NCBI RefSeq assembly: GCF_963921235.1
Contig: NC_086101.1
Span: forward strand, 166,346,001 to 166,410,000
Reading direction: 5' to 3'
From: Mobula hypostoma
Taxonomy: Eukaryota
DNA length: 64,000 nt
A program made the position numbers and the translations under genes. Shown here piece by piece: positions 29,682 through 61,321 of the stretch. Below the pieces are notes generated by a model. The model saw nothing but the letters and a program-made list of their open reading frames with translations, was not told the origin of the DNA and did no database searches. Each line of letters begins with the position of its first letter. Position 1 is the first letter of the stretch.

Positions 29682-29741
29682 CTGGTTAAAAAAATACAAA
29701 TACTAATTAATTTTGGTCCAAAAAAAAACAACTTTTGGCTA

Positions 29742-35690: not shown

Positions 35691-35772
35691 GAAATAATAA
35701 CTGCAGAGATCAAATTTCACAAAGAAATGAAGCAAATCAAAATAACTTAAAAGGTAATTCAAAACATCTTAC

Positions 35773-41107: not shown

Positions 41108-41143
41108 AGTTGACGTTTCAGGCCAAGACCCTTCTTCAGGACT
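41108..41143 (-). ncRNA. Minimal hammerhead motif (core intact, one stem I mismatch)
   Basis: Minus strand reads agtc-CTGAAGA-agggtcttggcct-GAAAC-GTC-aact. Confidence 0.62.
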
Positions 41144-41641: not shown

Positions 41642-41677
41642 AGTCCTGACGAAGGGTCTCGGCCTGAAACGTCGACT
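41642..41677 (+). ncRNA. Minimal type I hammerhead ribozyme motif
   Basis: agtc-CTGACGA-agggtctcggcct-GAAAC-GTC-gact: stem I agtc/gact, stem II hairpin, palindromic ACGT in place of stem III. Confidence 0.75.
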
Positions 41678-42640
41678 GTACCTCTTCCTAGAGATGCTGC
41701 CTGGCCTGCTGCGTTCACCAGCAACTTTTATGTGTGTTGCTTGGATTTCCAGCATCTGCAGAATTCCTGTTGTTAACATCCTGGTAAATCTCTCTGCACC
41801 CCCTCAAAAGCTTCCATATCCTTCCTATAATGAGGCAACCAGAAATGAACACAATACTTCAAGTATAGACTAACCAGAGCTGCAACATTACCTCACGGTT
41901 CTTGAACTCAATCTCCCAACAAGTAAAGGACAATACTCTACATGCCTTCTTCACCTCCCTATTAACTTGTACAGCAACTTTGTACATCTGTGGAAGTGGA
42001 CTTCAAAATCCCTCTATTCCTCCACACTAATAAATCCAGCCGTTTGACCTTCAAAGTATATCACGTCACATTTTTCCAAATTGAACTCCATCTGCCACTT
42101 TCTCATCCAAGTCATTTATAAAAATCCCAAAGAGAATTCCCAGAACAGAACCCCACAGCACACTGAGCTCCAGCAGAATACGCGAGATCTCCTACCACTC
42201 TCTGTCTTCTGTGGGCAAGCCAATTCTGAATGCCACCTGACTTTCCAAATGAACCTACCACGGGGAACACTGTCAAAGGTCTTACTAAAAACCACGTACA
42301 CCTCAAGTGCACTATCTTCATTATGCATTGTATCACATCCTCAAAGAATTCAATCAGACTTGGGAGTCATGATCTGCCCCTCTCAAAACCATGCTGACCA
42401 TCCCTATTCAGACTATGCCTCTCCATTTAATACCCATAAACCCTACCTCTAGGAATCCTCTCCAATAATTTGCCTATAACTGAAGAAAAACTCCCTACTC
42501 CTTTTCTTGAACAAAGGAATGGCATTTGCCACCCTCCAATCATCTGATTCTACTCCTGTGGCCAGCGAAGACACAAAGATCACCAAAGAAGCAGCATCTC
42601 TTCCTTCGCTTCCCTAAGTAACCTGGGGAATAGCCCATCC

Positions 42641-42888
42641 ACACGAGGAATTCTGCAGATGCTGGAAGTTCAAGCAACACACATCAAAGTTGCTGGTGAA
42701 CGCAGCAGGCCAGGCAGCATCTCTAGGAAGAGGTACAGTCGACGTTTCAGGCCGAGACCCTTCGTCAGGACTAACTGAAGAAAGAGCTAGTAAGAGATTT
42801 GAAAGTGGGAGGGGGAGGGGGAGATCCAAAATGATAGGAGAAGACAGGAGGGGGAGGGATGGAGCCAAGAGCTGGACAGTTGATGGAT
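42641..42888 (-). mobile_element. Penelope-derived short element
   Basis: Nearly identical to the reverse complement of 8205-8407 and 41540-41770. Confidence 0.9.
42737..42772 (-). ncRNA. Minimal type I hammerhead motif, sense within CENPH intron 1
   Basis: Minus strand reads agtc-CTGACGA-agggtctcggcct-GAAAC-GTC-gact. Confidence 0.75.
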
Positions 42889-43028
42889 GAAATATTCCGT
42901 CCACTTCGGGGACTTCTCCCATTTTTTAAAAATTCCAGCACATCCTCTTTACTAACGTTGCCAGCTTTCAGCATATCAGCACCCAGCACTGAACGGACAT
43001 AAACTACAAAGGCATTTCAATCCCTTAC

Positions 43029-43087
43029 TCCATATTTCGTGCCGCTCCCTCCCCCGAATCCACTGCCGTGCGCGGCGCCGTCTCCAT
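43029..43087 (-). CDS. CENPH: CENPH coding exon 1 (METAPRTAVDSGEGAARNM); alternative in-frame ATG at 43126
   Basis: In the CpG island. ATG in gcaATGg context; donor GA|GTAAGG (phase 2) matches the phase of exon 2. Sequence is poorly conserved, so this is the least certain exon. Confidence 0.7.
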
Positions 43088-43089
43088 TG

Positions 43090-43441
43090 CGGACGCTTCT
43101 TCTGCTCGCCTGCTCAATATGTTCATTGGGCAAGCTGGAGCTTCAGGGCGGGGCTTCTGACAGAGCTCGATTCTGTTTGGTTCACGGCGACATCAATCGC
43201 GATTCCCCGCCCCCCAGCGCCCGAGGAACGGCGGGGATTGGTATATAATGTCGGCAGTCGATTGGTCGCGCCCGTGGAGGCGGGTCGCTTGAATTTGAAG
43301 CGGGAGAGGAGGCGGGCGAGCGGGCGACAACGGTCGGACGCTGCTCCGGGTGTGTGGGGGCTGGATTGGGGCTGCGGGAGAGGAGGCAGCCGGTGCTCAA
43401 CACGACATGAACCTGTAGCAGCCCATCCAAGAACAACTCGG
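43090..43441. promoter_or_regulatory. Bidirectional CpG-island promoter (CENPH and divergent gene) with CCAAT, GC-box and CDE/CHR motifs
   Basis: ATTGG at 43125, 43237, 43261, 43365; GC boxes at 43146 and 43205; GGCGG(43279)-N4-CTTGAA(43288) followed directly by TTTGAA(43294); splice donors facing outward on both sides (43028 minus, 43442 plus). Confidence 0.8.
43300..43441 (+). other. Non-coding first exon of unrecognised plus-strand gene (5' end approximate)
   Basis: GC-rich segment downstream of the CHR ending in donor CGG|GTAAGG; in-frame TAG upstream of the exon-2 ATG, so 5'UTR. Confidence 0.65.
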
Positions 43442-44279
43442 GTAAGGTATGGAGCACGTAGGCCACATGATCCGGAGCATAATAAACCAGAGGGAAGCTT
43501 GGGAATGGGAACTAAATTCTCAATGCAGTTACCATTTCTGTGAGCGTGCGATCCAATTTGTTTTACTGCGTACAAGTGCTTCTGGTCCGTGGTGTATGGT
43601 AAAAAAAAGGTTAGATCGCATGGGATCTGATTGCCAACCGGATTCAAATCTGACTTGGTAGGAGTCTGTAAGTATTAGTGGGAGGCTGTTATTCTGTGAA
43701 AAGCGGTGTGTTGTAGGTTTCGATGCTGGGTCCACTCTTGTTTGTCATTTATGTTAATGTTTTTGGATGGAGATGAACTGGAGAGATGTATAAAAGACTG
43801 ACAGATTGGAATTTAACTTGGCTAAATGTGAGTACTGTATTTTGGTGATATAAGCTGGGGCAGGACTTGCACAATAAATGGCGGGACCCTAGATTGAACA
43901 GAGAGCCTTGGAGATACAGATAGATACATGAGGGACGGCAAATGTTGGAATTTGGAGACTTAGACCACCTGCTAGAGGAAGTTAGTAGATTGAGCAATAT
44001 CTGTGGGATCTAAGTCAATGTCTCAGATTTAAAATCTGTATCAGTACTGTTTCAAAGTTGAGTTTATTGTTTGTGAGTACAGGTGAAAAATGTACTTGCT
44101 GCAGCATCACAGGCACATAGCATCAGATATGCAGCATTCACAATTCAACATAAATTACAGTATGCAGTTTTTTTTCAAGAAAAGGCACAATTAGAACAAA
44201 CTTAGACAAACTTCTACAGATGTGTTTTAAGGCCCTTGTTTGGATAAATCCTATCAAAAAATGGATATGGTCCAGTTCT

Positions 44280-44978
44280 CGTACAGGATACCCTTAAAGT
44301 TAACCTCCAGGTTGAGTCAGTAGTGAAGAAGGTGAATGCAATGTTGGCATTCATTTCTAGAGGAATAGAGTATAGGAGCAGGGATGTGATGTTGAGGCTC
44401 TATAAGGCGCTGGTGAGACCTCACTTGGAGTACTGTGGGCAGTTTTGGTCTCCTTATTTAAGAAAAGATGTACTGACGTTGGAGAGGGTACAGAGAAGAT
44501 TCACTAGAATGATTCCGGGAATGAGAGGGTTAACATATGAGGAACATTTGTCCGCTCTTGGACTATATTCCTTGGCGTTTAGAAGAATGAGGGGAGACCT
44601 CATAGAAACATTTTGAATATTGAAAGGCATGGACAGAGTGGATGTGGCTAAGTTGTTTCCCATGATGGGGGAGTCTAGTATGAGAGGGCATGACTTAAGG
44701 ATTGAAGGGCACCCATTCAGAACAGAAATGCAAAGAAATTTTTTTAGTCAGAGGGTGGTGAATCTATGGAACTTGTTGCCACAGGCAGCAGTGGAGGCCA
44801 AGTCATTGGGTGTATTTAAGGCAGAGATTGATAGGTATCTGAGTAGCCAGGGCATCAAAGGTTATGGTGAGAAGGCGGGGGAGTGGGACTAAATGGGAGA
44901 ATGGATCAGCTCATGATAAAATGGCGGAGCAGACTTGATGGGCCGAATGGCCGACTTCTGCTCCTTTGTCTTATGGCC
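44280..44978 (+). mobile_element. CR1 3' end
   Basis: ORFs 44323..44616 and 44620..44892 (RPHLEYCGQFWSP, FFSQRVVNLWN). Confidence 0.9.
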
Positions 44979-44979
44979 T

Positions 44980-45617
44980 TCATCATGGGTATGTCCTCAC
45001 TATCGAGCACATCCGCCCAGAGTGCTGTCACAGGAAAGCAGCATCCATCATCAGGGAACTCACCACTCAAGTCATGCTCTCTTCTCGCTGCTACAATCAG
45101 GAATAAGATACAGAAGCCTCAGAGCCCACACCTCCAAGTTCAGGAACAGTTGTTACCCCTCAACCATCAGGCTCTTGAACCAGAAGGGATACCTTCACTT
45201 GCCCCATCGCTGTCTTCCCTCAACCTACGGGCTCACTTTTAAGGACACTTCATCTCATGTTCTCAATATTTATAGCTTATTTATTACTATTTATTATTTT
45301 TCATTTGTATTTGCACTGTTTGTCTGTCCTGTTGGGTATAATTTTTCTTCTCGTTGATTCTATTGTTTCTTGGACTTACTGTGTATGCCTGCAAGAAAAT
45401 GAATCTCAGGGTTGTATAAATTGAAGAGAAGTAGCAGTTCCTGAACCTGATGGTGTGGGATTTCGGGCTGAGGGTGACTCAAGTGTGCACCTTCCTTACG
45501 ACTGCATCTGTATGCTGTGTCTGGGATGGGTCATCTGATGTGTAAGCACCCAGTGATATAAAGCTGCGGATTTCTCCATGCTATTTTCCCTCTCTATAGA
45601 CTGGTATGTGTTTACCG

Positions 45618-45661
<44 letters not shown>

Positions 45662-45780
45662 CCTGAAATCAACACAATCAGCTCTTTAGTTTTACTAACA
45701 TTGAGCAAGATATTGATGTTGCAGCACCAGTCAACCAAACATCTTGTATTGCTCCTGTAAACTGACACATCACACCTCTA
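44980..45780. mobile_element. Rex1-type fragments (plus, then minus)
   Basis: HALFSLLQSGIRYRSL (plus) and WCCN...LNVSKTKELIV (minus). Confidence 0.7.
45619..45658. repeat. (CA)20 microsatellite
   Basis: Direct observation. Confidence 0.97.
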
Positions 45781-45999
45781 ATTTTGATTAAGGCATTTGG
45801 CGTGCTTGTCTTTATCGCCACTCCATCCACATGTGTCAGGCAACTATGTATCTGTACCCCTTGACTTATTGATTTCCTCCAGCAGAGGAGTTTATTGCTC
45901 AAGGGGTACAGATACAGAGCTCCCTGCTACAGGCAGACGGAGTGGCAATAAAGGCAAGCATGCCAATTGTGTACAAGAGTTTGAATGCCTAGCTGCACC

Positions 46000-46500
46000 T
46001 CTACAGGTTGTTGCTGAATCATATTTGGAGCATTGTGTGCGGTTCTGGTTGCCCAGCTGTAGGTAGGAATCACTGAGCTGGAAAAGGTGCAGAAATTTCA
46101 AGGATATTACTGGGATTTGGTGGGGAGGGAGGCGTTCTTGAGTTATAAGAAGCTAAATAGTCTGGGAGTTATTTCCCTGGAGTGTAGGAAGCTGCAGGGT
46201 GACCTTATAGAGATTTATAAAATCATGATGGCTGCAAATAAGATGGATAAACACTGTCTTTTTCTCTAGGTGGGGGGAGCTTAAAATGAGAGGATATGGA
46301 TTTAAGAGAGGAGAAAATTTTAGAAGACACGTGAAGAGCAATTTATTTTTCCCATGGTGAGGGTTGTCAGTCTGTGAATGAGTTGCCAGAGGAAGCTGCA
46401 TAGGTGCGTGCAGTTACAATGCTTAAAAGGCATTTAGACGGGTACATGAATAGAGAAGATTTATAGGGATGGGGACCAAATGCAAGCAAATGAGATTAGT
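46000..46500 (+). mobile_element. Degenerate CR1 3' end
   Basis: LEHCVRFW and GDLIEIYKIM remnants. Confidence 0.7.
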
Positions 46501-46737
46501 GCAGTTGTATTAGTGCAATTCTCAAAGTGCAATGCAGTATTCAATCAACAATTAAATTCACAGGAACAATTGGAAATGTCTTTTAATAAAATTGTTATCC
46601 TATCTCGTCACCTGCAGAAGACTATGTATGTTAAAAATATTAATGTTACTTTTTGTTGCTGCCACTGAATAGTAACCACATTGCATAGTTACTGTAATTA
46701 CATAATCTGTCATAAATATTTTTGTTTTTCTAGGATA

Positions 46738-46955
46738 ATGGCTCCAACACCTGGATCAAACAGATTTCGAGAAGTGGATGTCACTCCATGCCGTGGATAC
46801 AAGAATCTCCATACTGGAATAAAAATACAATCTCAGCAGCTCTTTGCAAATAGAAGGAAGATCAATGGATCTCCTAATGAGAAAGGAAAAATCTCTCTTA
46901 CTCCACGGCATCGATTGGTAACACCTTTAATTTCAAACACACTTGATCATCTGAT
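46738..46955 (+). CDS. Unrecognised gene, first coding exon (MAPTPGSNRF...NTLDHL)
   Basis: tttgtttttctag acceptor (exon from 46734), ataATGg Kozak context, consensus donor AT|GTAAGT (phase 2); non-repetitive sequence. Confidence 0.78.
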
Positions 46956-47199
46956 GTAAGTACTAAGGTTTGAGATAGAAGAATGCTTCAATATCACTCT
47001 TCCAATGATATATTCATCTTCACTATGCTTAAACCAGTTAGTACTTCATGAAACTATTTCTGAATCGACTTAAGATTTCTACTTAACTAATGTTCTTTCC
47101 CACGAAATTTTGTGAAATATAATTTTGGAAGCCCAGACTCAACAAGCTTTTGGGAATTCCATTAAGCTGTCAGATCCTCAAATAAGATGGTTAGTCGGG

Positions 47200-48300
47200 T
47201 GGTACCTTCAGGACTCATGCCAAGGGGCAAGTCCTGTTTATCCAATTCAATAAAATTGTTTGACTGCAGCAGATTGACTGGAGGGTAATCCAGTTGATGC
47301 GTATGTAGACTTCCTAAAGGTTTTTGATAAGATGCCACATTACAAGCTTATCAGCAAAGTTGAAGCATGTGACATAAAAGGGACACAGATGGAATAGATG
47401 TGATGTTGGATGGGTAACACAAAAGAGGGTCGTAGTGAGTGTTTTTTTTTCTGGACTGGAAGAAGATGGACTGAAACATCCCCCAGAAGTTAGTGTGAGT
47501 ACTGTCATTTTCTTTGGGGTGGAGGACTATATTAATGCAATTCATAATTTCTAAGTTAGCAGATGACACATTTTTCAGTATTGCGGCACAGTAATAATGG
47601 AGAGGAAGTAAACAGGGTGGTGGAATGGCCAGATGTATGGCAGTTAAAATTTAATGTTGGGAAATGTGAGGTGATGTATTTTGGCCAAAGAATTAGGAGA
47701 GGTAATCTAGAATAATAGATCCTATCCTAAATGTGTGCAGGAGCGGATGAACCTGAAGGTATCTATGCATGCGAGTATAAAAGCAGAGAAATTAAAACGT
47801 GCTTGATCATGTTTCAGCTGGAGAATTGTGTTCGATTGTGGTCCCTCCATTTTAGGAAGGAAGAATTATGAAAGTGATGGGAAGGGAGCAGAAAAGATTT
47901 TTAAGAATATTTCCTGGGACATTTACAAGTATAGAGCAAAGGCTGGGGCTGTTTACTTCAGGGAGGAGAAGGCTGATCTGATCTGAGATTTGCTAGTGGC
48001 AGGCAGTTTATTTAGTGGAGGACTCAAAGACTGGAGATCATGAGTACAGATAAATGGGAGAAGAATTAAAAATAACATGAGGGAGGGAAGAAATGTACTG
48101 AGTGGTGGTTTAAAACCTGGAACTGCGGCCTGTAGATATAATAGAAGCAAGGTTCATTCTAGCTTCAAAAAGAAACTGGATAAATTAATGGCAAAAAATT
48201 TGCAATGCCATGGAGAAAGGGCCAGGAAGTGGAACTAGAAAGTTCTGATAGATACAGTGTTCTGAAGAGCCCACTGTGTTGTAACCATTCAGTTATTCTA
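47200..48300 (+). mobile_element. Degenerate CR1 RT fragment
   Basis: YVDFLKVFDK, KLADDT and FNVGKCEV remnants. Confidence 0.65.
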
Positions 48301-49019
48301 TTGTTAATTTGGTTACTAATGTACAGATAACTTGCATTATCTGATTGTCAATTTAATTATTTTATTATAAAGGATTGTAATGGTTGCCTAGGTTATACTT
48401 CAGGAGCATGCTACTCATTAAAGTCATTAATTTAGTGATTTATTGTGGGTAACATATAATATTTTGTTTCCGCTTGTCAGCAATTCTATAGGGAGAAAAA
48501 CATGCTTTATTTCTTGAATTCCACTTTTTAAGTGGGTGGCTGACATTGTGATTTTGCTTTCCTCATTTCTTCTGCTTTCCACCACAACTCATCTCTCCCC
48601 TCTAGCCAATCCTTCCTTCCAAATCCACTGTGTGCTGTGCTACTTTCATTTACCCTCATTGTTGGCTCTATGAGGCATTTTTCTTGCCAAGAAGTGATTT
48701 AATTTAATGGAAAAACTAACCTTGTAACATGCACAGAGTGCAAGTTCCAATATTCAAAATATTTCTTGAAGTTGGTTTGTGTGATTGGGAAAACTTGTCC
48801 GTTGTTACATTACCTCAAGGATCCTCAAGGACGAGGTTATGAAATACCTCGAGGTGCATGACAAGCCTATGAGAGAGAAATAATTTTAAAAGATTGGGTC
48901 CAATTGTGATGTCACTGAACTCACATTGAAGAATAACTAGTTAGGGTACATTTCTTTCATGGTCATTTCAAGAATTGTAGATAATTTAATCGAACTCAAT
49001 ATATAAGTTCTTAATATAT

Positions 49020-49915
49020 ACGGCCACAATTGTAGTCTGTGTCTTGGGTAATGATGAGTTTGAGTACAGAGAGGAAATTAAGAACCTGGTGGCATGGTGC
49101 GAAGACAATAACCTATCCCTCAACGTCAGCAAGATGAAGGAATTGGTTGTTGACTTCAGAAGGAGTAGTGGACCGCATGATCCAATTTACATCAGTGGTG
49201 AGCAAGTGGAACAGGTCAAAAGCTTTAAATTCCTCAGGGTCAATATCACAAATGACCTGACTTGGTTCAACCAAGCAGAGTCCACTGCCAAGAAGCCCCA
49301 CCAGCGCCTTTACTTCCTGAGAAAACTAAAGAAGTTTGGCCTGTCCCCTAAAAACCTCACTAATTTTTAGAGATGCACCGTAGAAAGCATTCTTCTAGGG
49401 TGCATCACAACCTGGTATGGAAGTTGTCCTGTCCAAGACCAGAAGAAGCTGCAGAAGATCGTGAACACAGCCCAGCACATCACACAAACCAATCTTCCGT
49501 CCTTGGACTCACTTTACACCGCACGCTGTCGGAGCAGTGCTGCCAGGATAATCAAGGACACGACCCACCCAGTCAACACACTTTTCATCCCTCTTCCCTC
49601 CAGGAGATGGCTCAGGAGCTTGAAGACTCGTACAGCCAGATATGGGAACAGCTTCTTTCCGACTGTGATAAGACTGCTGAACGGATCCTGCCCCAGATCT
49701 GGGCCGTACCCTGCAAACATCCAGACCTGCCTCTCGGTTTTTTTGCCCTACCTTACTTTCCCTTTTCTATTTTCTACTTATGATTTATAATTAAAACTTT
49801 TAATACAGTATTTACTATCTATTTGTACTCCAGGGAGCACGAAGCACAGAATCAAATATCGCTGTGATGATTGTATGCTCAAGTATCGATTGTTTGGTGA
49901 CAATAAAGTAAAGTA
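49020..49915 (+). mobile_element. Rex1-type LINE 3' fragment
   Basis: WCEDNNLSLNVSK...QRLYFLRKLKKFG; ends aataaagtaaagta. Confidence 0.88.
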
Positions 49916-49939
49916 ATTTTAATATGATGGTGGCAAAAG

Positions 49940-51360
49940 GTCACAAATGTAGTTCCACTGTTTAAGAAAGGAAGGAGGCAGCAAAAAGAAAATTACAGAT
50001 CTATTAGTCTGACATTGGTAGTTGGAAAGTTATTGGAGTCGATCTTCAAGGACGAGGTTATGAAATACCTCGAGGTGCATGACAAACCAGCATGGTTTCA
50101 TGAAAGGAAGATCCTGTCTCACCAACCTATTGGAATTTTTTGAGGTAATCTCAAATAAGATTGATAGGGGAGAGGCTGAGGATGTTGTGTATTTGGATTT
50201 TCAAAAGGCATTCGATAAGGTGCCGCATAAGAGGCTGCTTAATAAGATGAGAGCCCATGGAATTACAGGAAAGATATTGGAATGGGTGGAGCATTGGCTG
50301 ATAGGCAGAAAGCAAAGGGTGGGAATAAAGGGATCCTATTCTGATTGGTTGCTGGTTACTAGTGGTGTTCCGCAAGGATCGGTGTTGGGGCTGCTTCTTT
50401 TTACAATGTACATCGATGATTTAGATTATGGATTAAATGGTTTTGTGGCTAAGTTTGCGGATGACAACAAGATAGGTGGAGGAGCAGGAAGTGTTGAAGA
50501 AACGGAAAAGTTGCAGAGAGACTTGGTCAGTTTAGGAGAGTGGGCAAAGAAATGGCAGATGATGTACAATGTTGCAAAATGTACGGTTGGACATTTTGGA
50601 AGAAGAAATAATCAGGCAGATTATTATTTAGATGGGGAGAAAATTCAAAAATCAGAAGTGCAAAGGGATTTGGGGGTCCTCGTGCAGGATACCCTAAAGG
50701 TTAACCACCAGGTTGGATCGGCAGTAAGGAAATCGAATGCTATGTTGGCATTCATTTCAAGAGGAATAGTGTATAAGATTAAGGAGGTGTTGATGAGGCT
50801 CTATGGGACACTGGTGAGACCTCATTTGGAATACTGTGTGCAGTTTTGGGCCCCCTATCTTAGAAGGGATGTTCTAATGTTGGAGAGAGTCAAGAGAAGA
50901 TTTACGAGGATGATTCCTGGAATGCAGGAGCTAACATATGAGGAGCGTTTGTCGGCTCTTGGAGTGTATTCATTAGAGCATAGAAGAATGACAGGGGATC
51001 TCATAGAAACATTTCGAATGTTGAAAGGGTTGGACAGAGTAGATGTGGAAAGGCTGTTTCCCTTGGTGGGTGAGTCCGGACAAGAGGCCACAGAGGATAC
51101 CCATTTAAAACAGAGATGAGGAGAAATTTTTTAGCCAGAGGGTCATGGATTTATGGAATTCGTTGCCACATACGGCTGTGGAGGACCGATCATTGAGGGT
51201 GTTTAAGGAGGAAATTGATAGGTATCTAATTAGTCAGGGTATCAAGGGACATGGGGAAAAACCCAGAAATTGGAACTAGATGGGAGAATAGTTTAGCTTG
51301 TGGGGTGGTGGAGCAGACTTGATGGGCCAAATGGCCTACTTCTGCTCCCTTGTCTTGTGA
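49940..51360 (+). mobile_element. CR1 LINE 3' fragment with RT
   Basis: ORF 50079..51119: QHGFMKGRSCLTNL, YLDFQKAFD, FADD. Confidence 0.93.
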
Positions 51361-51530
51361 AAAATGGATCAGAGTCTCATTATGTCTTTCAAGAAGAAAG
51401 CGTATAAAGTGTTTAAGTACTTTTCAGAAAACAAAGATTTAAAATTAGAATAGGCATATTTCAGAGCACGAAGTGTAAATAAGTTTTTATGCATTGTGTT
51501 TTTAAAGAAAATATTTTTTGTATTGTACAG

Positions 51531-51607
51531 GTCCAGTATTGAAAAGAGCCACAAAAAATCAGAAAAACCAGTCAGCCCAAATCTTGCAATGCTTAGAATG
51601 ACTCCAG
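51531..51607 (+). CDS. Unrecognised gene, coding exon (SSIEKSHKKSEKPVSPNLAMLRMTP)
   Basis: ttttttgtattgtacag acceptor, CAG|GTGAGT donor; only the phase-2 frame is open, matching the previous exon. Confidence 0.8.
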
Positions 51608-52249
51608 GTGAGTTGGTAGTTTGACAAAAAAAGCTATTTTTAAATTGAATGCCATTAAAGTGGAAAGCTTGAATCCTCTGGCCTCAACCTCAAATGCTCA
51701 TTCTGACCTTCCATGGGTCCAGCATTTGGTGCCTGATTACTTACAGGTTTGGCCTGCTTGAAGTTTACAGCTTAGGAGGTTTGGAAAATGGCATTTTGAG
51801 TATTGCTTTAATAAAGACACTAGAAGAGATAACAGATTATTGCAAAAAGCCATCTGGCTTACTGTTATACACGAGAAAAGGAAACCTATCCTCACCCTGA
51901 ATAGTCTTTGTGCAATTCTGGACCTAACCCTATATTTGATTCTCAAATGGGCTCTGAAATGGCAGAGCAAGCTGCCTAGTTGTACTATTTGCTGTTAATC
52001 TCAAACAATAAAACTGGGCAGACTACCTGGCATGACTTGGGTACAATTTTGGGAGTGGCAAAGTTGTACCCACTTTGGTTGGATCTGCAAAGCTCTTCTC
52101 GCAAATATCTGGGAACAGGTAACAAAACTGGGAGAGCTGTCCCACAAGTTGGTCAGATGATACCATAACATAGCCTCCAGGTTACGATTCTGTGAATAGG
52201 AATATTTCAATTCCTGGGTAAATCCTGCCTCTCTGCCAGGAAGATCCAC

Positions 52250-53650
52250 CAGAGATTACAGCATAGCAGTATTCCAAAGGAATGAGACGTATTATGGCTT
52301 CAGATCAAATATGGACAAGGAAACTTCTTCCTGGTAACCACCTTCCACCCTCCCTGAGCCAATGATTCCATGTTCCTGCATGTTGAATGACAGTTGAAAC
52401 AAGCACTTAAAGTAGCAAAGATACAACATGTATTCCGGATGCAGGACTTCAATGTACATCTCAAAGAGTGACTTTGGAAGGCTGCCAGACTTTGCCTTCA
52501 ACAATTATTGAATATACCCACTTGACCTTGACACTGCTTGTTCCCGCCCACCCAACACCATCTGTCTGGATTGCCACTCCACACTGAGTAGTGAAGTACA
52601 TTGCCGATTTTTGTACCAGTCAATTGCACCTCAACCCTGTCAATAACGTCTCTATATATAATGCTATAACGACTGTTTTTAGCGCTGATTCGTTTAGTGC
52701 TCGAATTCCAGGTCTAACTCCAAGTGTTAAGCATGTTACCAGTGTAATACCAAGATTAGTCTTCAAAACATTTCAATCATTGACAGGTGGGCCCAGCATT
52801 TGAGTGCTCAAGAAACATCTGTAATTTTGTTCAGTGACAAAAGCCAAATAGGTGATCCATTTGGCTTCCTTTGATTTCACCAACTCAGAAACCAGTCTCC
52901 AACCAATTTAATGCACCCTATAAAATAGCACATTACCTGAGAGCTGGACATCACAGACTGAGGTACCAAACAACATCCCAAGACCTAAGTTATACAGCTA
53001 ATGCACCTCTCATCAAGCTATTCCAATTTCAATACTGGCACAGACCTGACAATATAGAAAATTGACCACATTTGACCTGTTTTCACTCAGGACAAATCCA
53101 GTCCTGCTAATTACAACCCAATCATCAATTATTCATTGATAAAGTGATTGAAAGTGTCATTGATGGTACTATCAAGCAGCATTTACTTGCCAGTAAATTG
53201 CTCTCTGATGCTCTAGTTTGGTTTTGCTAAATATACGTAGCCCCTGACCTGACCACATCCTTGCTTCATACTTTTAATCTGACCTAAATTTCAGAGGTGA
53301 GGTGAAAGTGACTGCCCTTGACATACAGTATCAAAGAGTCCTGCTAAAATTGTAATCAACGGGCATCAAGGGGAAAGCACTCCAGTATTGAGAGTCATAT
53401 CTTGCACAAAGCAAAATAACCCCAGGACATCACCGTAGGAATTTCGCTGGACACTGTATTAGGCCCAATGATCTTCAGCCACTTCACCTTCCTTCCAAGA
53501 TCTAGTCAGAATTCAGGATGTTTGCTGATGACTGCTTAATATTCAATCCATTGCAAACTCTTCAGCATCTGAAGCAATCCATGTCTGAATGTAACAAATT
53601 ATGACAGCATTCAGACATGAACGGATAAGCAGTAAGTTACTTTCTGCCAC
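52250..53650 (+). mobile_element. Highly degenerate LINE (RT remnant)
   Basis: NYNPI, VTALDI, VLGPMIF and MFADDC remnants in RT order. Confidence 0.55.
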
Positions 53651-53754
53651 TTCCCTGAATGAGCATAGCTTCATCCTGACAATAGCCAGGATAAAGTGGT
53701 GTGTGTGATTGATGGCCTGTTAATGGATATGAGGTGTTGCTCCATATTCTGTCT

Positions 53755-54160
53755 GATGCATGAACTTTGATTTCTCTAACTTCCAGTAATTTCTCCCACC
53801 TCTCTCCTCTCTTTTTTTATTTCTCATTCTAGTTACCTTCTCACCCCTTCTCTTTTCACCTGCCCATCACCTTCCTCTGGTTCCCCTTCTTCCATGGTCC
53901 ACTGTCCCCTCCTATTAGATTCTTTCTTCTTCTGCCCTTTACCTCTTCCACAATAGCTTCTTACCTCATCCCCTGCCCCCACACCCACCCACCTTCCACT
54001 TTACCTGGTCTCACCTTCTAGTTCCCCCTCCCCATCACCTTTTTTGTTTTAGCTTTCCAGTACTAATGAAGGGTCTCAGTCCAAAATATTGGCTATTTAT
54101 TTTCCCTCCATAGGTACTGCCTGACTTGCTGAGTTCCTCCAGCATTTTTTGGGTTGCTTG
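53755..54160 (+). mobile_element. Old Penelope-derived element
   Basis: Pyrimidine tract plus diverged family tail. Confidence 0.7.
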
Positions 54161-54580
54161 AAATGTTTATCATGATTGATAAAACAAATATAATGGCATA
54201 AAACATCAGACATGCTCTATAAACTTCTCAAAAGTGATGTCTACTCATCTTTATTTGCACCTTAAATTGAAAAGCATCGGTTACTGTAAATTGGAAATTG
54301 GGACATCTGCCAATGTGCAAACCAATCACAGGCAGAACTCAACTGTTCATCTGCAGGAACGATAGCTAGCTTGAGTTCCAGTTGAGTTTTTGATGCTTAT
54401 TCATTTAACAAGTAGTAAATCTTTGATTTAATTGTTTATCTAATTTTGCTTTCCTTTTGCATTGCTTTTCCTGCAATTAATATTGTTAAACTATCAAATT
54501 ATCAAAAGCATGAGTAAGTGTTTCCACAACTGCAACCTGAAGTAAAGTTGAAGGCTTCTTAATTTTATTTAATGAACCAG

Positions 54581-54663
54581 GTCTTCAACAGAAACAAAAG
54601 CTCTTGCAGGAAAAGCATCTAAAGGCAAAATCGTCAGTGGACAAGATTCCTATAGGTGGTGGA
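54581..54663 (+). CDS. Unrecognised gene, coding exon (LQQKQKLLQEKHLKAKSSVDKIPIGGG)
   Basis: aaccag acceptor, GTAAGT donor, 83 nt, phase 1 to 0, open in the required frame. Confidence 0.75.
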
Positions 54664-56617
54664 GTAAGTATTTACTTCGTAATAAACACTGAATCCTATT
54701 TGCAAATGCCATCTGAATGTAATGGCAGCTTCCAAATGGAGATCTTTGAATGACATATACTCATAGTAGTTTGGAAAATAAGTAAGCCCTTCAAACCGGC
54801 ATTGTCGTTTAATATAATGACCAATTTGATTCTAACCTCGGCTTTGTATTTCCATCTACTTGTAGATCTGAAGTGTCCTATTACTGAATAAAATAAATAT
54901 GTATTTGTATTCACAGTATAAAAGGGATCCAAACCTTTAAATATAAATTTCAGATGTATGAATAAACAAGTCGATTGTTTATTTGCCTTTTGGATACTTG
55001 GCTAATTCATGGTCTTGAATTTGCTCTCAGGTATTAACTGTTCACTGATGCAATGTATTATCAGATAGTGCGGTGTAGTCTGCTTTGGACTGCAGAATCA
55101 TGAACTCAAAAAATTACCCATGTGAAAAGCACATTAGTTAGCAATACTTCTATAAATCTGTACATTAAAAAAATAGCAGCCTTTGAACCACGTTGTAACT
55201 ATTGGTCTTTTGTTTTGCTAGTTAATATTTTTCTCATTATTCACTTTGATTTGACCATTAAGCTGTTTGTAGACTAGCAGCTTCCAGGAGTTATTCCAAA
55301 TCATTTTTTAATGACACTGTGTACAAGTTGCCTTGGTAGTATTTTTTAATGAACCTTTGTTTCTAAAACTACTTGACTATTCAAAATGCATATTCCATTT
55401 TTTTTGAAACCCTTTTACCAAGCTTACTTATCGAAAATGTTAAGTGTACATTCATTTAATGGTCAAGGCTTAAGACAGTGTGGAAAGAGAGACAGATTTA
55501 ACTTTTCATACCTAAGATCCCTTGTCAGTTGTGGAAGGGGACTGGTTAACCTCAGGGGAAGCGAAAGGCCCTCAGATCAACCTGTTATGGCATGGAGAAT
55601 ATGTGGTGGGTTTGAATGTCGATAGTGAATGAGCCAGATGGGACTAGCAAAGTGTTCTTTCCTGTTGGCATTGCCTGTTTCTGACATTTTCACCCTGTTT
55701 TAGTGGGATGGACCTTGGGTGTTTGGGTAACAGAATTTTTTGAATAGAGTGTTGAAGAGTTGAGACATGTCATCACTGTCGATGTGTTGTTGTATCTCCT
55801 GCATCTCTGTCACCATCTATTCTTAGAGTACAGGTTTTTTTTGTTGGAGTTAACAAATTTCACGTCACATGCTGGTGATAATAAACCTGATTCTGATTCT
55901 GACCACCTCCTGTAGATGCCTATAAAACCCTTTTTTAAAAAAAAAACTGGCATAGGATGGAGCCTCCAATCCAAGAACACTATACATGTGTAGTTAATTG
56001 CCTCCTTGATCTCTTGGTCATTCACATCAAATCTGTCCTGGTTCTCAGTAGATAAACAGAATTTGTAGGTGCCAATTATGGTGAACTTCCGGGCAGCCCA
56101 TAAACTGTGGACGCTTTGCATCACCTGGGTGTTGACATATTGTCTGAGGTTTCATATGGGAAGAGCTGGCTTTATGGAGTCCTTGAGTGCTCCAGGATTG
56201 AAGGTATATTAATGTTTCTGTTGGCACTGATGTTTTAGGTCCAGGTTGATGGGGGTAATAAAGCAGATTGTTCAAGTATATTATCTGAACAAGGGGCTGG
56301 AGAGGTATCTGCATCATAAGCATGTATGTATTAACATAACAAAGTCCATTGCTAGGACTCTGGTTGATTCATGATCTTTTTTGTGCATGTTCCTTTAACA
56401 AAAAAGGTTGTTCACTATGATAGGACTGTAGTTGGAACTTAAGTTATTGTTCTGGCAGGAGATAGTTCTGCCTGTGACTGGTCTGCACTTTGGCAGATGT
56501 CCCATTTACCAATTTGCAGCCTAATAAAATGCTGAATTTAATTTGTGAAGCATTGGAGGCCTAAATTGGCATCATGGTGTTGATGTTAGGATGTTATTAG
56601 AAAGTAGAATGAATTTC

Positions 56618-59600
56618 TTTTTTTTTAATTTTATTTTTATTTGGATAAGGAATTCACAATTATCACGTACTTTTTTCACACATATAACCTTTTCCATTTT
56701 TTTATATGTATAAAACTACAATTATTTATACATTCTTAAGTACACATTGAGATGATATAAAAGGAAAATAAACATTTAAATAGATAATTATGTACTGTGG
56801 TAAATCTAACCTATTAGGCTAAGTAATGAAATTAGTTGTTAAGAAAAATGGTAATAATAGTTTCCATACAACCCTTCTGGACCATTTCCACTGGTCCAAA
56901 ATGTTGCATACAAGCCTATATACCAACCATTGTAGGTGTTTATATCCCAATTTGTTCGTGCTTGTTCCTGCCCGCAGACATAATTATCCAATCCCTATGT
57001 ACTTATTTACTTAATTTTTTCTTTTTTTTAATCCCTTTCCCAAATCTTTCCCTTTACTTGTGTTAATTCTCTATTTTCCAAAAAAAAACAAACATTTAGA
57101 CTAGGGGTGCTTACGTTAGCAATATTACTGTGTTGATGAGAAGAGCAATATAAATCATTAGGAGAGTCATCTAAAGTCTGCTCGCATTGGGGTTATATAT
57201 TCAATCCATTTATTCCAGATTTGATAAAATGTTTCTTTTTGAGTTCTCAGGGAGTAAGTCAACTTTTCCATTTTAAATATTTCCAAGATAATTTCGTACC
57301 AATCTTCTAATGTAGGTGGTATTGGATTTAGCCATTTTCTAGTGATTGGTTTCTTACTTGCCGCTAGGAGGGCCTGCAGCAACTTTATATCTTCCTTCTG
57401 TTCAAGGAACAATACATGCCCCAAATAGAGCGTCTCAAAGTTCAGAGGTATCTGGGACCTAAGTACCTTAACTAATGTTCTATGAATACCTTCCCAAAAT
57501 AGACTTAATTTAGGGCAATCCCAGAAAATATGAAAATGATTTGCCTCCTTGGAGCCGCACCTTCTCCAACACATCACATTTGTATCTTTATATTTTTCCT
57601 GATATGGGGTCTTGAAGTATCTTATAATGTTTTTCCAACAATGTTCTCTCCAAGTCAAAGAATTAGTCGAGGACCATTGAAAGCTGCAGATTTTCCCCCA
57701 AGCCTCCTCTGAAAGTACCAACCCCGCTTCTTTCTCCCACTTCTCTTTAATATACAGTGTATTTACATTTTTAGCATGGGAGAGTGCACTATATAGGCGA
57801 GAAACTGATTTACTAGGTATTGAACTGCAAGCCGAATTCAGAATCTTGAAAAATTCTAATTCTACTGTTGATAGGTCTGTATATCTACAACTCTGGTTAA
57901 CATAGTTTCGTATTTGAAGGTACCTAAAAAAGTCATTATGTTCTAGGCCATGTTTGTCCTGCAGGATTTGGAAATTTTGTAATACTCTTTTATCTATAAA
58001 TGAGAGGTAGGTTGTAAGACCTTTCTTTATCCATAGCTCAAATCTTTTATCTCCTCTGTTGGGAAGGAATTCGGTATCATATGCACACCATCTAAAGAGT
58101 TTTAACATGTTATTAATTCCACATGAATTAACCACCTTCTGCCATACTTTTAATGTAAGATTTATCCAAGCATTATTAAACTTTTCCAACTGGGCCATCA
58201 ATCCTTTGTCAGCTATTGAGGCCTGAAGAGGAAAACTGTCAACTAATCCAAATTCTATTTCCTTCCATCTAGCCTTATATTCCCTATTACACCAATATAA
58301 CAGAGGGGTTATCTGTGAGGCATAAAAATAATTTCTCAGGCAAGGAAGAACCATACCTCCTCCTTCCTTCCCTAACTGTAAGGTGTTATATCGAATTCTA
58401 GGTTTCCTTCCTTGCCAAATGAAGCGGGAAATCCATTTGTCCCATTCCCTGAATTGATTATCATCCACCTCCACTGGTAAAGTATGGAAAAGATATAATA
58501 ACCAAGGAAGAATATTCATTTTTATAGTATTTATCCTTGAATTTAAACTTAAAAAGGGGATAAGATTCCATCTATGCATATCTGCTTTTATCTCTGAGAT
58601 TAATGGCCCATAATTTACCTGTGACAGTGTTGAAAGATCCTTCGGCAGGGTTATTCCTAAATATTTTAATGATTTAGCTTCCCACTTAAGATCGTATGTA
58701 TCCTGCAATTTTTTGGATGGTGTATAATTTAGGGACATAACCTGTGTTTTCTTTACATTTATTTTATAACCTGATATTTTCCCAAAGTCATCCAACAGTG
58801 TAAACAATCCTATAAATGATTTTTCTGGTTCACTCAGATAGACCAAAACATCATCTGCGAATAACGCCACTTTCTGTTCAATCCCTGCCACCTTGATACC
58901 TTTTACGATTTCGCTCTGTCTTATTAGTTGGGCAAGTGGTTCAATATATAGCGCAAAAAGGAGAGGAGAAATTGGGCATCCCTGTCTAGTGCCTCTCTCT
59001 AAAATGAAGGAGTCAGAGAGGTCCCCATTTATCTTAATTCGGGCTGTAGGGCTGTCATATAGAGTCTGAATTACTTTAATAAACCTTTCTTGAAAGCCGA
59101 ATCTTCCTAACACTCTGTATAGGAATGCCCAACTAACCGAATCAAAAGCTTTCTCAGCGTCCAATCCTACTACCATTGTCTCTGTCTCGTTCTTATTAAC
59201 CTGTTCTAATATGTGCAGAGTTCTCCTTATGTTGTCCTGTGTTTGTCTTTGTTGAATAAATCCAGTCTGGTCTAAATGGATTAGGCCAGGTAAAAGCTTT
59301 TCCAATCTGCGCGCTAATATAGATGTAAATAGTTTGTAATCTAAATTAAGAACACTAATTGGCCGATAATTGCCACATTCTAGTTTATCTTTACCCTCTT
59401 TAGGAATAACTGAAATAATCGCTTCTCTCCAGGAAGGTGGAGTTTCTCCTCTCTGCAAGATCCAATTAAAGGTGTTAAGTAGTAATGGGGCTAACTGTGT
59501 CTTCAGGGACTTGTACCACTCTGAGGTAAACCCATCAGAACCCGGGGACTTTCCAGCCTTTAACCTAGAGATGGCCACGTTCAGTTCTTTGACAGTTACT

Positions 59601-60414
59601 GGTTCTAATAAACTTTCATTTTGTAAATCTGTAAGTTTAGGTAGATCTAAAAAATTCAATACACTGTCTATATAGGGCTCATTGGGGGCCTGGGGTTGGG
59701 AGTACAGCTCTCGATAATATGTTTCAAAACTCTCTTGAATTTTCCCTATTGTACTCTCCACAAGCTTTGTCTTTGGATTCTTTATTTTATGAATTGTATT
59801 GTCTGCTTGTTGTTTTCGTAATTTATATGCTAATAATCTAGCTGATTTACCTCTTACTTCATAATTCTTTTGTCTCAGGTAAAGAAAATTTCTTTGAGTT
59901 TCCAATGTATAAATATCATCAATTTCACTTTGCAATTTCCTAATTTCCTGTTTTCGATTTGAATTACTTTTGTTGCTATCTACAACTTGAAGTTGTTTTA
60001 ATTTTCCTTGAAGGTCTGCTAATTTTTGTGCATTGATTTTTTTCATGTGAGTAGTAATGGAAATAATTTTCCCTCTCAGTACAGCTTTCAATGTATCCCA
60101 TAAAATCACTGGTGATGTTTCTCCCATGTCATTAAGGTCTAGATATTCTTTGATTTCTCCCCTTAATCTCTCCATTACTTTCGGGTTATTGAGTATATGT
60201 GAGTTTAGCCTCCATAGTGTTTTCCTCATTTTCCTTTCCAGGATTAGAGACATAGAGACTGGGCTATGATCCGACAGATCAATTGTTGCAATATTACAGT
60301 TTTTTATCCTGAGTCTATCTGTATTAAAGATAAAGAAATAGTCTATCCTTGAATAGGCTGAATGAGGGAAAGAGTAATATGTATAATCTTTAGTAGTAGG
60401 GTGTAATTCCCTCC
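56618..60414 (-). mobile_element. Young 5'-truncated L1-clade LINE with uninterrupted ORF2
   Basis: ORF 57167..60253 (open back to the truncation point): end of APE (YSRIDY, SDHSPV), RT (LDAEKAFD, GTRQGCPISP, FADD), CCHC knuckle; poly(A); perfect 19-bp TSD agaaagtagaatgaatttc (56599-56617, 60415-60433). Confidence 0.96.
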
Positions 60415-60626
60415 AGAAAGTAGAATGAATTTCAATCAGTTCTTACCCTGCTGTGCTTTAATCTGAAATGAAGAAATGAAAAAGTATATTCACTCCTAAG
60501 CAGAGATGCTCATCGTGTTGAATACTGACAAAATAGTCAAAAACAATTGAAAAATTGTCATAATAAACTTCATGAAAATTCTTATTCCTATCCATGGCAT
60601 TTAGTAAGTTTTTTTTGTAATTCCAG

Positions 60627-60744
60627 ATTAGTTTATGGCCAGAAATGGACAATATGAGACTTACTAAAGGAGAAGTAATCGGTCTTGCAATAACATCCTT
60701 CCTGCTGAGTACTGCTGTCTTCATCATGTTTGAATACCTGCATG
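60627..60744 (+). CDS. Unrecognised gene, coding exon with predicted transmembrane helix (ISLWPEMDNMRLTKGEVIGLAITSFLLSTAVFIMFEYLH)
   Basis: ttttttttgtaattccag acceptor, G|GTATGT donor, phase 0 to 1; 19-residue hydrophobic stretch. Confidence 0.8.
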
Positions 60745-61184
60745 GTATGTTTAGGGTTTGTTATTTTATATATCCATAGTTTCTCTCATTTTACCTATAT
60801 AGGAGGTTTTGATAAACATCTTCCCTGAAAACTACTATCCCATCTCTTCTCTCAGGGTTGATGGACATGCACATTAGATTCAATGTTTTACGTTCACTTC
60901 AACATCACTTTTTCTCTCCATTTTGTCAGATTAAATTATATTATAAGTACCTATTCAATTTCCAAAACCTCATTATATGTAATTTCTGAAAAGAACTCAA
61001 GGGTTCATAGGCATTTATATAATTTTGTTTATTTGCATTTTCTTTGATCTTATTTTAATCTCTGATCCTCAGAGGATCTAACTTCCCTATAATTCTTTCT
61101 ACTTTCAGCAATCTTGTAAATTACTTTCGATGGAATAAATTGTCGTCATGATGGCAGTGCTAATGAGTGAATTTCTGTTTTCAG

Positions 61185-61321
61185 GCCCATTACTTTTGAA
61201 TTTAAATTTGTATAGTGGGAGAGTGAGAACATTTCACAGGAATCATCCTGTTTCAAGCACCTCTGAACTAGTCCTCAACCAATCACTAGTAAGGTGGCAC
61301 AAAGATTTCTGGAAGTTATTG
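61185..61321 (+). CDS. Unrecognised gene, coding exon (PLLLNLNLYSGRVRTF...RWHKDFWKLL)
   Basis: tttctgttttcag acceptor, TTG|GTGAGT donor, 137 nt, phase 1 to 0; within ORF 61148..61474. Gene continues downstream. Confidence 0.8.

Follow-up and report, generated by a model that had tools for sequence, protein, structure and literature searches.

Lamin B receptor and other inner-nuclear-membrane proteins carry CDK1-regulated basic tails, and mitotic phosphorylation is proposed to free the tail from its partner. The ER proteins STIM1, CLIMP-63/CKAP4 and Lunapark bear cytosolic S/T-P clusters whose phosphorylation in mitosis changes microtubule or membrane interactions. MAPKs, GSK3 and DYRKs act on S/T-P clusters too, a point against assigning such clusters to CDK. 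In late cell-cycle promoters, 4 nt separate the CDE from the CHR; DREAM occupies such sites first and MuvB-B-MYB/FOXM1 afterwards (PMC9090780). Both CTTGAA and TTTGAA are functional CHRs, and in head-to-head promoters the CCAAT boxes upstream of the CHR set the direction of the regulated gene (PMC4176359). A gene in the ray Mobula hypostoma has a promoter of this layout and encodes a basic tail rich in S/T-P sites.

The window analysed here is a stretch of 64,000 nt, and its interval 43300-61321 holds a bidirectional promoter, a 5'UTR exon and the first five coding exons of LOC134347149 (residues 1-211 of 381; Table 1). Splicing from the ATG at 46738, whose context carries A in position -3 and G in position +4, to 46955 and then across the other four coding intervals yields 211 aa without a stop and with end phases 2, 1, 0, 1 and 0, exactly as the preliminary description had it. 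These residues are 100% identical to residues 1-211 of the RefSeq entry 'uncharacterized protein LOC134347149' from Mobula hypostoma (381 aa). The label 'unrecognised' given to the gene at that stage does not hold, as RefSeq already contains the model as an uncharacterised LOC, and likewise about 70 orthologues. In the window sequence, a GT donor and a polypyrimidine-AG acceptor flank the intron at each of the five junctions. The gene extends past coding exon 5, because a GTGAGT donor directly follows base 61321. Residues 212-381, with three further transmembrane (TM) helices, are encoded past base 64000 and had no tblastn match within the 64,000-nt window; the CDS spans 27,775 nt in the assembly gene table and thus ends near window-equivalent position 74512.

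Table 1. Features of the LOC134347149 locus, in window coordinates.
Feature	Position	Strand	Description
CENP-H gene	19530..43126	-	CDS starts at 43126; coding exons run from the first (about 43029-43126) to the last (19533-19652)
Two inverted CCAAT boxes	43237..43265	+	ATTGG at 43237 and at 43261; for the + strand gene, both lie upstream of the CDE/CHR; motif scan
Non-coding first exon (5'UTR)	43266..43441	+	5' limit approximate, by homology to transcript contig L007; 3' limit a predicted canonical GTAAGG donor
CDE/CHR tandem	43279..43299	+	GGCGG 43279-43283, 4-nt spacer, CTTGAA 43288-43293, then directly TTTGAA 43294-43299
Coding exon 1	46734..46955	+	Encodes residues 1-73 and ends in phase 2; five S/T-P sites in a variable basic tail
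Coding exon 2	51531..51607	+	Residues 73-98; invariant S88-P...L..LR.T97-P motif
Coding exon 3	54581..54663	+	Residues 99-126; conserved K/Q-rich helix; invariant GGG
Coding exon 4	60627..60744	+	Residues 127-165; invariant W-P-x-M-x-x-M-R-L juxtamembrane motif and TM helix 1 (143-164)
Coding exon 5	61185..61321	+	Residues 166-211; start of the luminal/extracellular helical loop, N-x-S sequon (197), invariant W203-H204

LOC134347149 is a real gene, transcribed in a related batoid and under purifying selection. A Logan transcript contig from another batoid (L007; 1,441 nt) is intron-less and has an intact 381-codon ORF. It aligns to the window in five blocks whose ends fall on the proposed coding-exon borders, which confirms the borders put forward for the coding exons. 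The dN/dS ratio is 0.20 (dS 0.47).

The neighbouring gene on the minus strand is CENP-H, whose last coding exon matches PF05837 (E 5e-10), and the head-to-head arrangement proposed earlier is borne out. Its product is listed with 284 aa in the Mobula assembly gene table, and the two CDS starts lie 3,612 nt apart in both the window and the assembly. LINE and SINE copies are very abundant throughout the window, and they fill the CENP-H introns. CENP-H and the family gene also stand head-to-head in Carcharodon (white shark), Ptychodera, Saccoglossus and Pecten (scallop), and they are adjacent in tandem in Amia; the linkage is broken in Owenia, Asterias, Tubulanus and amphioxus, where the family gene is kept. 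The head-to-head CENP-H neighbour is taken as the ancestral arrangement of the family. Among conserved bidirectional gene pairs, this pairing ranks with the older ones, and it offers a way to study what keeps pairs of this kind together.

The predicted CCAAT and CDE-N4-CHR module points at LOC134347149 and is conserved from the ray to hemichordates and an annelid. In the window, it reads GGCGG-GTCG-CTTGAA, with the CDE exactly 4 nt upstream of the CHR, and the following TTTGAA at 43294 is the canonical CHR hexamer on the coding strand. The presence of such a promoter had been noted before; its occurrence across phyla is new. The element is also conserved in a second batoid: the L007 transcript begins upstream of the CDE, and nt 12-42 of its 5'UTR align to the element with a score of 40, compared to 16.1 ± 2.3 (maximum 31) for the rest of the window. 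The non-coding first exon also contains a 3-codon uORF at 43407-43418. The pattern GCGG-N4-YTTGAA has two matches in the 64-kb window against 0.07 expected. It occurs exactly once per locus in Ptychodera, Saccoglossus and Owenia (23-28 kb, both strands scanned), always on the gene's strand and 0.9-1.5 kb upstream of the CDS. The chance of three of eight loci having such an element is about 1e-7, as estimated from 0.07 per 64 kb. At five loci without a mapped TSS (Amia, Asterias, Tubulanus, amphioxus and Pecten), scans upstream of the orthologue gave no match to the strict pattern; a lone CHR would suffice without a CDE. The element belongs to the family gene, because Owenia retains it beside a Pygopus-like neighbour and not beside CENP-H.

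Every member of the family has a basic, disordered N-terminal tail of about 125 aa with 4-10 S/T-P sites. The mean of 5.5 sites compares with 1.4 in shuffled sequences, and enrichment is seen in 60 of 60 members, with a density of 4.7 per 100 aa in the tail vs 0.9 elsewhere. The tail pI exceeds 9 in all 60, the mean net charge is +9.8, and the pLDDT of the tail in the predicted model is below 50. The count of seven S/T-P sites in residues 1-98 of the Mobula protein was reproduced. Its TPCR, which had been singled out as a full CDK consensus and is the only one among the N-terminal tail sites, is not conserved and reads TPCH in sharks. Full-consensus S/T-P-x-K/R sites average 1.3 per tail at variable positions. 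The conserved proline-directed sites are S88-P, T97-P and T255-P-x-R/K, and the last, in the TM2-TM3 loop, is the only conserved site with the full consensus (L-[ST]-P-x-[KR] in 59 of 60 members).

The motif order after the tail is SP-x-L-x-x-L-R-x-TP-G, a K/Q-rich helix (L107 invariant, K110 and H111 nearly so), GGG-x-S-x-WP-x-M-x-x-MRL and four TM helices. The hydrophobic helix at residues 143-161 and the NQS sequon after it (197) were both found as described, and the sequon is kept in vertebrates, hemichordates and Pecten. The suggestion of a single-pass protein fell with the four hydrophobic peaks of the full 381 aa, and the accompanying warning that further helices might follow proved sound. 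An AF2 model is all-helical with long helical extensions (pLDDT 79.5, pTM 0.69). Invariant polar or aromatic residues lie in or beside the TM helices (H165, W203-H204, D246-N247 and E287), and TM4 contains the invariant stretch Y-x-Q-Y-Y-S-x-P. The tail and the TM2-TM3 loop (17 aa, 5 K/R) are predicted to lie on the cytoplasmic or nucleoplasmic side because of the positive-inside rule and the conserved sequon. The sequence has no retrieval signal and no LEM, SUN or KASH domain, and nothing else in it points to a particular membrane.

Protein database searches recovered about 70 single-copy orthologues, all unnamed in every source. Among vertebrates, they occur in cartilaginous fishes, non-teleost and early-branching ray-finned fishes and the coelacanth, and among invertebrates in amphioxus, hemichordates, echinoderms, molluscs, annelids, nemerteans, a brachiopod, a bryozoan and a priapulid. 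The group that includes LOC134347149, LOC121276709 (Carcharodon) and LOC102803668 (Saccoglossus) aligns end-to-end, and the family tree agrees with the species phylogeny, each species having a single copy. Two family alignments have 25-43 invariant columns (25 across 60 species), with the motifs SP..L..LR.TPG, GGG.S.WP.M..MRL, WH, LLYYL.DN, LTP.R, RCLPP and YLQYYS.P. Invertebrate members share three of the window's five intron positions (98/99, 165/166 and 211/212) and two downstream (262/263 and 301/302). Junctions matching the three in the window occur in Amia, hemichordates, scallop, annelid, sea star, amphioxus and nemertean; 98/99 is common to Amia, hemichordates, scallop, nemertean and amphioxus, 165/166 is conserved across Bilateria, and 211/212 is conserved as well. 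The family dates to the origin of bilaterian animals. Tetrapods and the usual model organisms appear to lack it, as three large protein searches returned no orthologue from tetrapods, other teleosts, arthropods or nematodes, in line with the earlier suspicion of a loss in mammals.

The promoter and tail suggest, with somewhat better than even confidence on our part, that LOC134347149 encodes a DREAM/MuvB-controlled G2/M membrane protein whose tail acts as a multisite CDK switch. DREAM would repress transcription in G0/G1 through the CHR, and MuvB-B-MYB/FOXM1 would activate it through the same element in G2/M. The basic tail may bind an acidic partner such as chromatin, microtubules or acidic lipid, and multisite phosphorylation by CDK1 in mitosis would release it; the proposed protein would therefore be a mitotically switched endomembrane protein of the ER or nuclear envelope. 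Its repeated loss in tetrapods, most teleosts, arthropods and nematodes argues against an indispensable core mitotic role. A conserved gene with no cell-cycle role is a serious but unlikely alternative: the product could be a four-helix channel, a transporter subunit or a receptor-like protein, tissue-specific and located in the plasma membrane or in an organelle, and other proline-directed kinases would act on its tail. The invariant polar and aromatic residues at the membrane helices and the long helical extensions would suit such a protein, as would the loss of the gene from many lineages with normal mitosis and its persistence in sea star, amphioxus, nemertean and annelid after the CENP-H link was broken; elsewhere, an indivisible promoter common to both genes would be the sole reason that the link persists. 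The best Foldseek neighbours of the protein are of the ion-channel type, such as insect gustatory receptors, ExbB and PomA, but every match has E ≥ 0.6 and TM-score ≤ 0.40. Two further points speak against this alternative: the CDE-N4-CHR on the gene's own strand in four distant species, one without a CENP-H neighbour, and the CCAAT boxes upstream of the CHR in the ray, a layout that is typical of late cell-cycle genes.

If the protein belonged, as a highly diverged member, to a family already characterised, for instance one with a differently named and fast-evolving orthologue in tetrapods, both the novelty and the mammalian loss would become artefacts of search sensitivity. We regard this as improbable. 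The three family searches were seeded by shared 5-residue words and kept at most 8,000 candidates, the only exhaustive search used the poorly conserved first coding exon as the query, and the fold search covered the PDB, all of which leaves some room for a missed relative. As a phmmer query, coding exon 1 alone recovered the shark orthologues. Against a missed relative, a 10-sequence profile gave 59 of 59 matches at E ≤ 1e-76 with nothing between 1e-76 and 1. Shark and hemichordate proteins are 44-49% identical; a tetrapod orthologue evolving at the family's usual rate would have shown up. The earlier finding of no named relative was upheld in all four comparisons. The exon pieces of the window had no Pfam match, full-length orthologues had below-threshold scores only, and no Pfam family was hit in more than 4 of 60 members, each time below the cut-off; PAP2, Oxidored_q3 and 7tm_7 membership was rejected, as these weak scores all fell below the gathering threshold. 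The PDB sequence-profile search had a best E of 0.24, two Foldseek searches of the PDB, one of them with the pLDDT-79.5 model, gave no significant match (best E 0.7 and 0.6), and the literature describes no relative. That the gene is an annotation artefact or a decaying pseudogene with chance open frames among repeats has a negligible probability. The LINE/SINE-rich window and some visibly chimeric database isoforms, such as P0005 with a C-terminus resembling repeat-derived (possibly LINE) sequence, would fit it, but it is refuted by the exact RefSeq identity, the same exon borders in a relative's transcript contig, the dN/dS ratio, the 25 invariant columns and the intron positions shared with invertebrates.

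The gene models were already in RefSeq; the new part is that the family has been recognised as such, along with its range, CENP-H linkage and promoter. The CENP-H pairing in white shark, two hemichordates and scallop, and the conservation of CDE-N4-CHR across phyla, go beyond the preliminary description. It is uncommon for a conserved gene under cell-cycle control to lack a known function, CHR targets seldom encode membrane proteins, and every database entry of this family reads 'uncharacterized', with no domain model. A bolder and distinctly doubtful proposal, drawn from the same sequences, is that the family is an undescribed cell-division component: a four-pass protein of new fold, physically linked to and co-regulated with CENP-H since the bilaterian ancestor, which MuvB and the CHR would switch on in G2/M and CDK1 would toggle on its basic tail, and which would connect endomembranes (ER or nuclear envelope) with chromosomes or the spindle. 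Such a component would have been overlooked because it was lost in tetrapods, zebrafish-type teleosts, flies and worms. If the cell-cycle reading is true, the ancestral animal mitotic programme had a membrane component that the main model organisms later discarded, which would offer a clean natural experiment on what replaced it.

The likeness to insect gustatory receptors and 7TM ion channels lies in long membrane helices that reach beyond the bilayer. These proteins led the Foldseek list, with a probability of up to 0.63 and TM-scores of 0.30-0.40, and 7tm_7 appeared below threshold in 1 of 60 members. The family has four helices instead of seven, and its helical extensions lie opposite the cytosolic loop by the positive-inside rule, in contrast to gustatory receptors; the non-significant matches (E ≥ 0.6) are taken as noise. 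STIM1, CLIMP-63/CKAP4 and Lunapark are, by analogy, membrane proteins with S/T-P clusters like the family, but they differ in topology and fold, share no homology with it and are kept in mammals. Proteins of the Lamin B receptor type share with the family a basic, disordered, S/T-P-rich N-terminal tail before a multi-pass membrane domain. The family lacks their Tudor, RS, sterol-reductase, LEM and SUN domains (Pfam empty), and it has four helices, not the eight of Lamin B receptor, with no similarity to it in sequence or fold. Compared with the canonical CDE/CHR late cell-cycle genes (CCNB1/2, CDK1, CDC25C and CCNA2), the putative late cell-cycle gene LOC134347149 encodes a multi-pass membrane protein, which is unusual in this class. 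Its promoter has the same layout as theirs, with CCAAT upstream and the CDE 4 nt from the CHR near the TSS (PMC4176359, PMC9090780). The CHR reads CTTGAA as in CCNA2 and is followed by the canonical TTTGAA, and the putative element recurs in orthologous promoters of the family, as it does in those of the canonical genes.

The membrane-protein gene is LOC134347149 of the Mobula hypostoma RefSeq annotation, so the gene model itself is already known; what is new here is that its family is recognised as bilaterian-wide and without detectable relatives, that the pairing with CENP-H is ancient, and that the CDE/CHR is conserved. A phmmer search of 1.84 billion representatives with the first coding exon returned two shark proteins, of 384 and 401 aa, whose N-termini align with it, and a query with the 384-aa protein returned the family, including P0012, 'uncharacterized protein LOC134347149 [Mobula hypostoma]' (381 aa). 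The 211 aa reported in the preliminary description are 100% identical to residues 1–211 of P0012; the gene described there as unrecognised is thus annotated, yet it does lack a name. In the Mobula assembly, the LOC134347149 CDS extends over 27,775 nt. Upstream of it, a gene on the other strand encodes a 284-aa CENP-H (PF05837); the two coding sequences begin 3,612 nt apart, which is exactly the distance from 43126 to 46738 in the window. Identity to P0012 and equal CENP-H spacing therefore establish the window as the LOC134347149 locus, with residues 212–381 coded past base 64000. The window contains no N runs, and tblastn found no exons for residues 212–381 in 61322–64000.

The gene is real and constrained, and an annotation artefact is excluded. 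All five proposed junctions have a GT donor and a polypyrimidine-AG acceptor, and the five coding exons (Table) splice into the 211 aa without a stop. GTGAGT follows directly after base 61321, so the frame runs on into further exons. A 1,441-nt Logan contig from run SRR13269312 (L007) has an unbroken 381-codon ORF with 82% identity to the window's protein and must be a spliced transcript from another batoid; in blastn it aligns to the window in five blocks whose ends coincide with the proposed exon borders. Between the two sequences, dN/dS is 0.20 at a dS of 0.47 (Nei-Gojobori), with 0.29 in the variable tail and 0.16 in residues 85–211. Because its UTR diverges past the CHR, this contig does not confirm the donor proposed for the non-coding first exon. 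The uORF of that exon is minimal (ATG AAC CTG TAG) and lies 23 nt 5' of the proposed donor.

Table. Window coordinates of genes, promoter motifs and repeats
Feature	Position	Strand	Remarks
ATTGG	43237, 43261	+	between CENP-H and LOC134347149
CDE/CHR	GGCGG 43279, four bases, CTTGAA 43288, TTTGAA 43294	+	
Non-coding exon	3' end 43441	+	bears three-codon uORF, 43407–43418
Five coding exons	46738–46955, 51531–51607, 54581–54663, 60627–60744, 61185–61321	+	end phases 2,1,0,1,0
CENP-H exon	19533–19652	minus	PF05837, E 5e-10
Near-complete LINE	3264–7247	minus	downstream of CENP-H last exon; long open frames
LINE ORF1, GDSL-esterase-type	6247–6762	minus	PF13472, 1e-12
LINE endonuclease	5102–6256	minus	PF03372, 5e-12
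LINE reverse transcriptase	3264–4547	minus	PF00078, 6e-28
~240-nt interspersed repeat, three copies	41043–41284, 41501–41773, 42641–42884	two direct, one inverted	95–98% alike

The three copies of the ~240-nt repeat lie in CENP-H intron 1, less than 2.3 kb from the bidirectional promoter, and 41043–41284 and 41501–41742 form a 242-nt inverted repeat with a 216-nt spacer; the ORF at 8009–8422 encodes a peptide of the same kind. Further ORFs resemble reverse transcriptase fragments by eye (~1.0–2.2, 14.4–15.0, 30.1–31.7 and 33.9–34.2 kb), and one of them (31233–31745) had no Pfam match.

LOC134347149 belongs to an ancient single-copy family. Three word-seeded searches of a 5.8-billion-protein collection yielded at least about 70 clusters, all with the source names 'uncharacterized' or 'hypothetical'. 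The vertebrate members come from sharks, rays, chimaera, sturgeon, bowfin, gar, bichir, elopomorph and osteoglossomorph teleosts, and coelacanth; other deuterostome members from amphioxus, two hemichordates, sea stars, a brittle star and a crinoid; and protostome members from many molluscs (including a cephalopod), annelids, nemerteans, a brachiopod, a bryozoan and a priapulid. Among the matches listed in these word-seeded searches, none was from a tetrapod, clupeocephalan teleost, tunicate, sea urchin, arthropod, nematode or cnidarian. All matches listed for a 10-sequence profile had E ≤ 1e-76 and the gap from there to E = 1 was empty, so the family is sharply bounded. In a maximum-likelihood tree of 57 members, the branching agrees with the species phylogeny, and each species contributes a single copy. 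Introns at Mobula residues 98/99, 165/166, 211/212, 262/263 and 301/302 are shared with Amia, hemichordates, scallop, annelid, sea star, amphioxus and nemertean, and those at 73/74 and 126/127 with Amia only. Two database members should not serve as family references: P0005 (Scyliorhinus torazame isoform X1) leaves the family alignment past about residue 300, with a C-terminal end that looks repeat-like by eye (possibly LINE), and P0023 (Polypterus isoform X2) has a duplicated internal block.

The pairing with CENP-H is equally old. Gene tables place CENP-H head-to-head with the family gene in Mobula, Carcharodon, the hemichordates Ptychodera flava and Saccoglossus kowalevskii, and the scallop Pecten maximus; it is adjacent on the same strand in Amia and not adjacent in Owenia, Asterias, Tubulanus and amphioxus. 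Because the head-to-head pair is common to a mollusc, hemichordates and cartilaginous fishes, it must date to the bilaterian ancestor. The head-to-head neighbour in Owenia was considered as a divergent CENP-H and rejected, being a Q/P/G-rich protein with a Pygopus-type PHD finger at its end. The gene table assigns no Pfam entry to this neighbour (Owenia locus L003, 6408–9531), whose annotated span includes the CDE/CHR (L003 9053–9066) belonging to the membrane-protein gene.

DREAM binds the tandem site formed by a CDE and a CHR four nucleotides apart, and CHR genes are then activated in G2/M by MuvB-B-MYB/FOXM1 (PMC9090780); TTTGAA and CTTGAA are both functional CHRs (PMC4176359). GCGG-N4-YTTGAA matches the 64-kb window twice, where 0.07 matches would be expected. 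The second (GCGG-N4-TTTGAA, 3037–3050, minus strand) adjoins the LINE with no gene start near and is probably due to chance or repeat-borne. The 5'UTR of the batoid contig matches 27 of 30 bases at the promoter element (43277–43306), with an alignment score of 40, where the rest of the window gives 16.1 ± 2.3 (31 at most). Batoids have thus conserved the element, which sits shortly downstream of the TSS. Exactly one match occurs in each of the 23–28 kb loci of Ptychodera, Saccoglossus and Owenia, always on the gene's strand and 0.9–1.5 kb upstream of the CDS, placements with an estimated chance of ~1e-7 from the window expectation. Since Owenia keeps the element without a CENP-H neighbour, the CDE/CHR serves the membrane-protein gene. 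Of two genes that share a head-to-head promoter, a single one is the late cell-cycle gene, marked by upstream CCAAT boxes (PMC4176359); judged by the motifs, this appears here to be the membrane-protein gene. Human CENPH is listed among p53-p21-RB (E2F-type) targets (PMC9090780). Lone CHR and CCAAT motifs within the 1.2 kb upstream of the other orthologues would be informative only with TSS positions. The CDE in Saccoglossus (locus L005, 8480–8507) and Owenia (L003 9030–9066) is embedded in AAAATGGCGG / AAAATGGCCGCC, a YY1-motif-like context.

The protein is predicted to combine a basic disordered tail with a helical membrane domain. Residues 1 to ~125 are predicted to be disordered (pLDDT < 50), and the tail is basic in 60/60 members (pI > 9, mean net charge +9.8). 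Each tail contains 4–10 S/T-P dipeptides (mean 5.5 vs 1.4 in composition-matched shuffles), a density of 4.7 per 100 aa compared to 0.9 in the remaining protein. Their positions mostly drift, except S88-P and T97-P within the invariant S-P-x-L-x-x-L-R-x-T-P-G, which is followed by a K/Q-rich helix (L107 invariant, K110 and H111 nearly so) and the invariant G-G-G-x-S-x-W-P-x-M-x-x-M-R-L abutting the first membrane helix. Hydropathy gives four membrane helices (143–164, 227–249, 263–283 and 352–374), making the protein multi-pass rather than single-pass as earlier proposed. Five K/R fall in the 17-residue TM2-TM3 loop, which also bears L-T-P-x-R/K in 59/60 members. Vertebrates, hemichordates and Pecten retain an N-x-S/T sequon near residue 197, within the TM1-TM2 loop. 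On the strength of these features we favour a cytoplasmic N-terminus, TM2-TM3 loop and C-terminus, which would leave two ~60-residue helical loops luminal or extracellular. The full-protein AlphaFold2 model was too weak (pLDDT 63.8), and residues 86–381 were modelled instead; with 60 sequences, this model is all-helical (pLDDT 79.5, pTM 0.69), and TM1 and TM3 extend as long helices past the membrane.

The reading we adopt is an integral membrane protein, probably transcribed in G2/M, whose basic cytoplasmic tail would act as a multisite proline-directed (CDK1) phospho-switch; for the switch we see about even odds. More tentatively, by analogy with LBR, STIM1 and CLIMP-63, the protein might reside in the ER or nuclear envelope, with its tail bound to chromatin or microtubules until phosphorylated. 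The core idea of the preliminary description survives with two corrections, to helix number and annotation status. The main rival, rather unlikely in our judgement, takes the protein to be channel- or transporter-like and without a link to mitosis, and the CENP-H linkage to be a frozen accident of the shared promoter.

A hidden relationship to a known family is improbable. PAP2 (0.012), MnhB and Oxidored_q3 matches in full-length members are sub-threshold hydrophobic noise without recurrence (any family in at most 4/60 members), and the five exon peptides had no Pfam match. A profile search of all PDB sequences found nothing (best E 0.24). Full-text literature queries with six LOC identifiers, and with CENPH plus 'bidirectional promoter' or 'microsynteny', yielded no papers. 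Foldseek comparisons of both AlphaFold2 models with the PDB were non-significant (best E 0.7 and 0.6, TM-scores ≤ 0.40), and E-value, TM-score, helix number and topology all speak against the top-ranked insect gustatory receptors and ExbB/PomA as relatives. These proteins have only long helices in common with the family, whereas the helix number differs and, given the topology favoured for the family, so does the side faced by the helical extensions.
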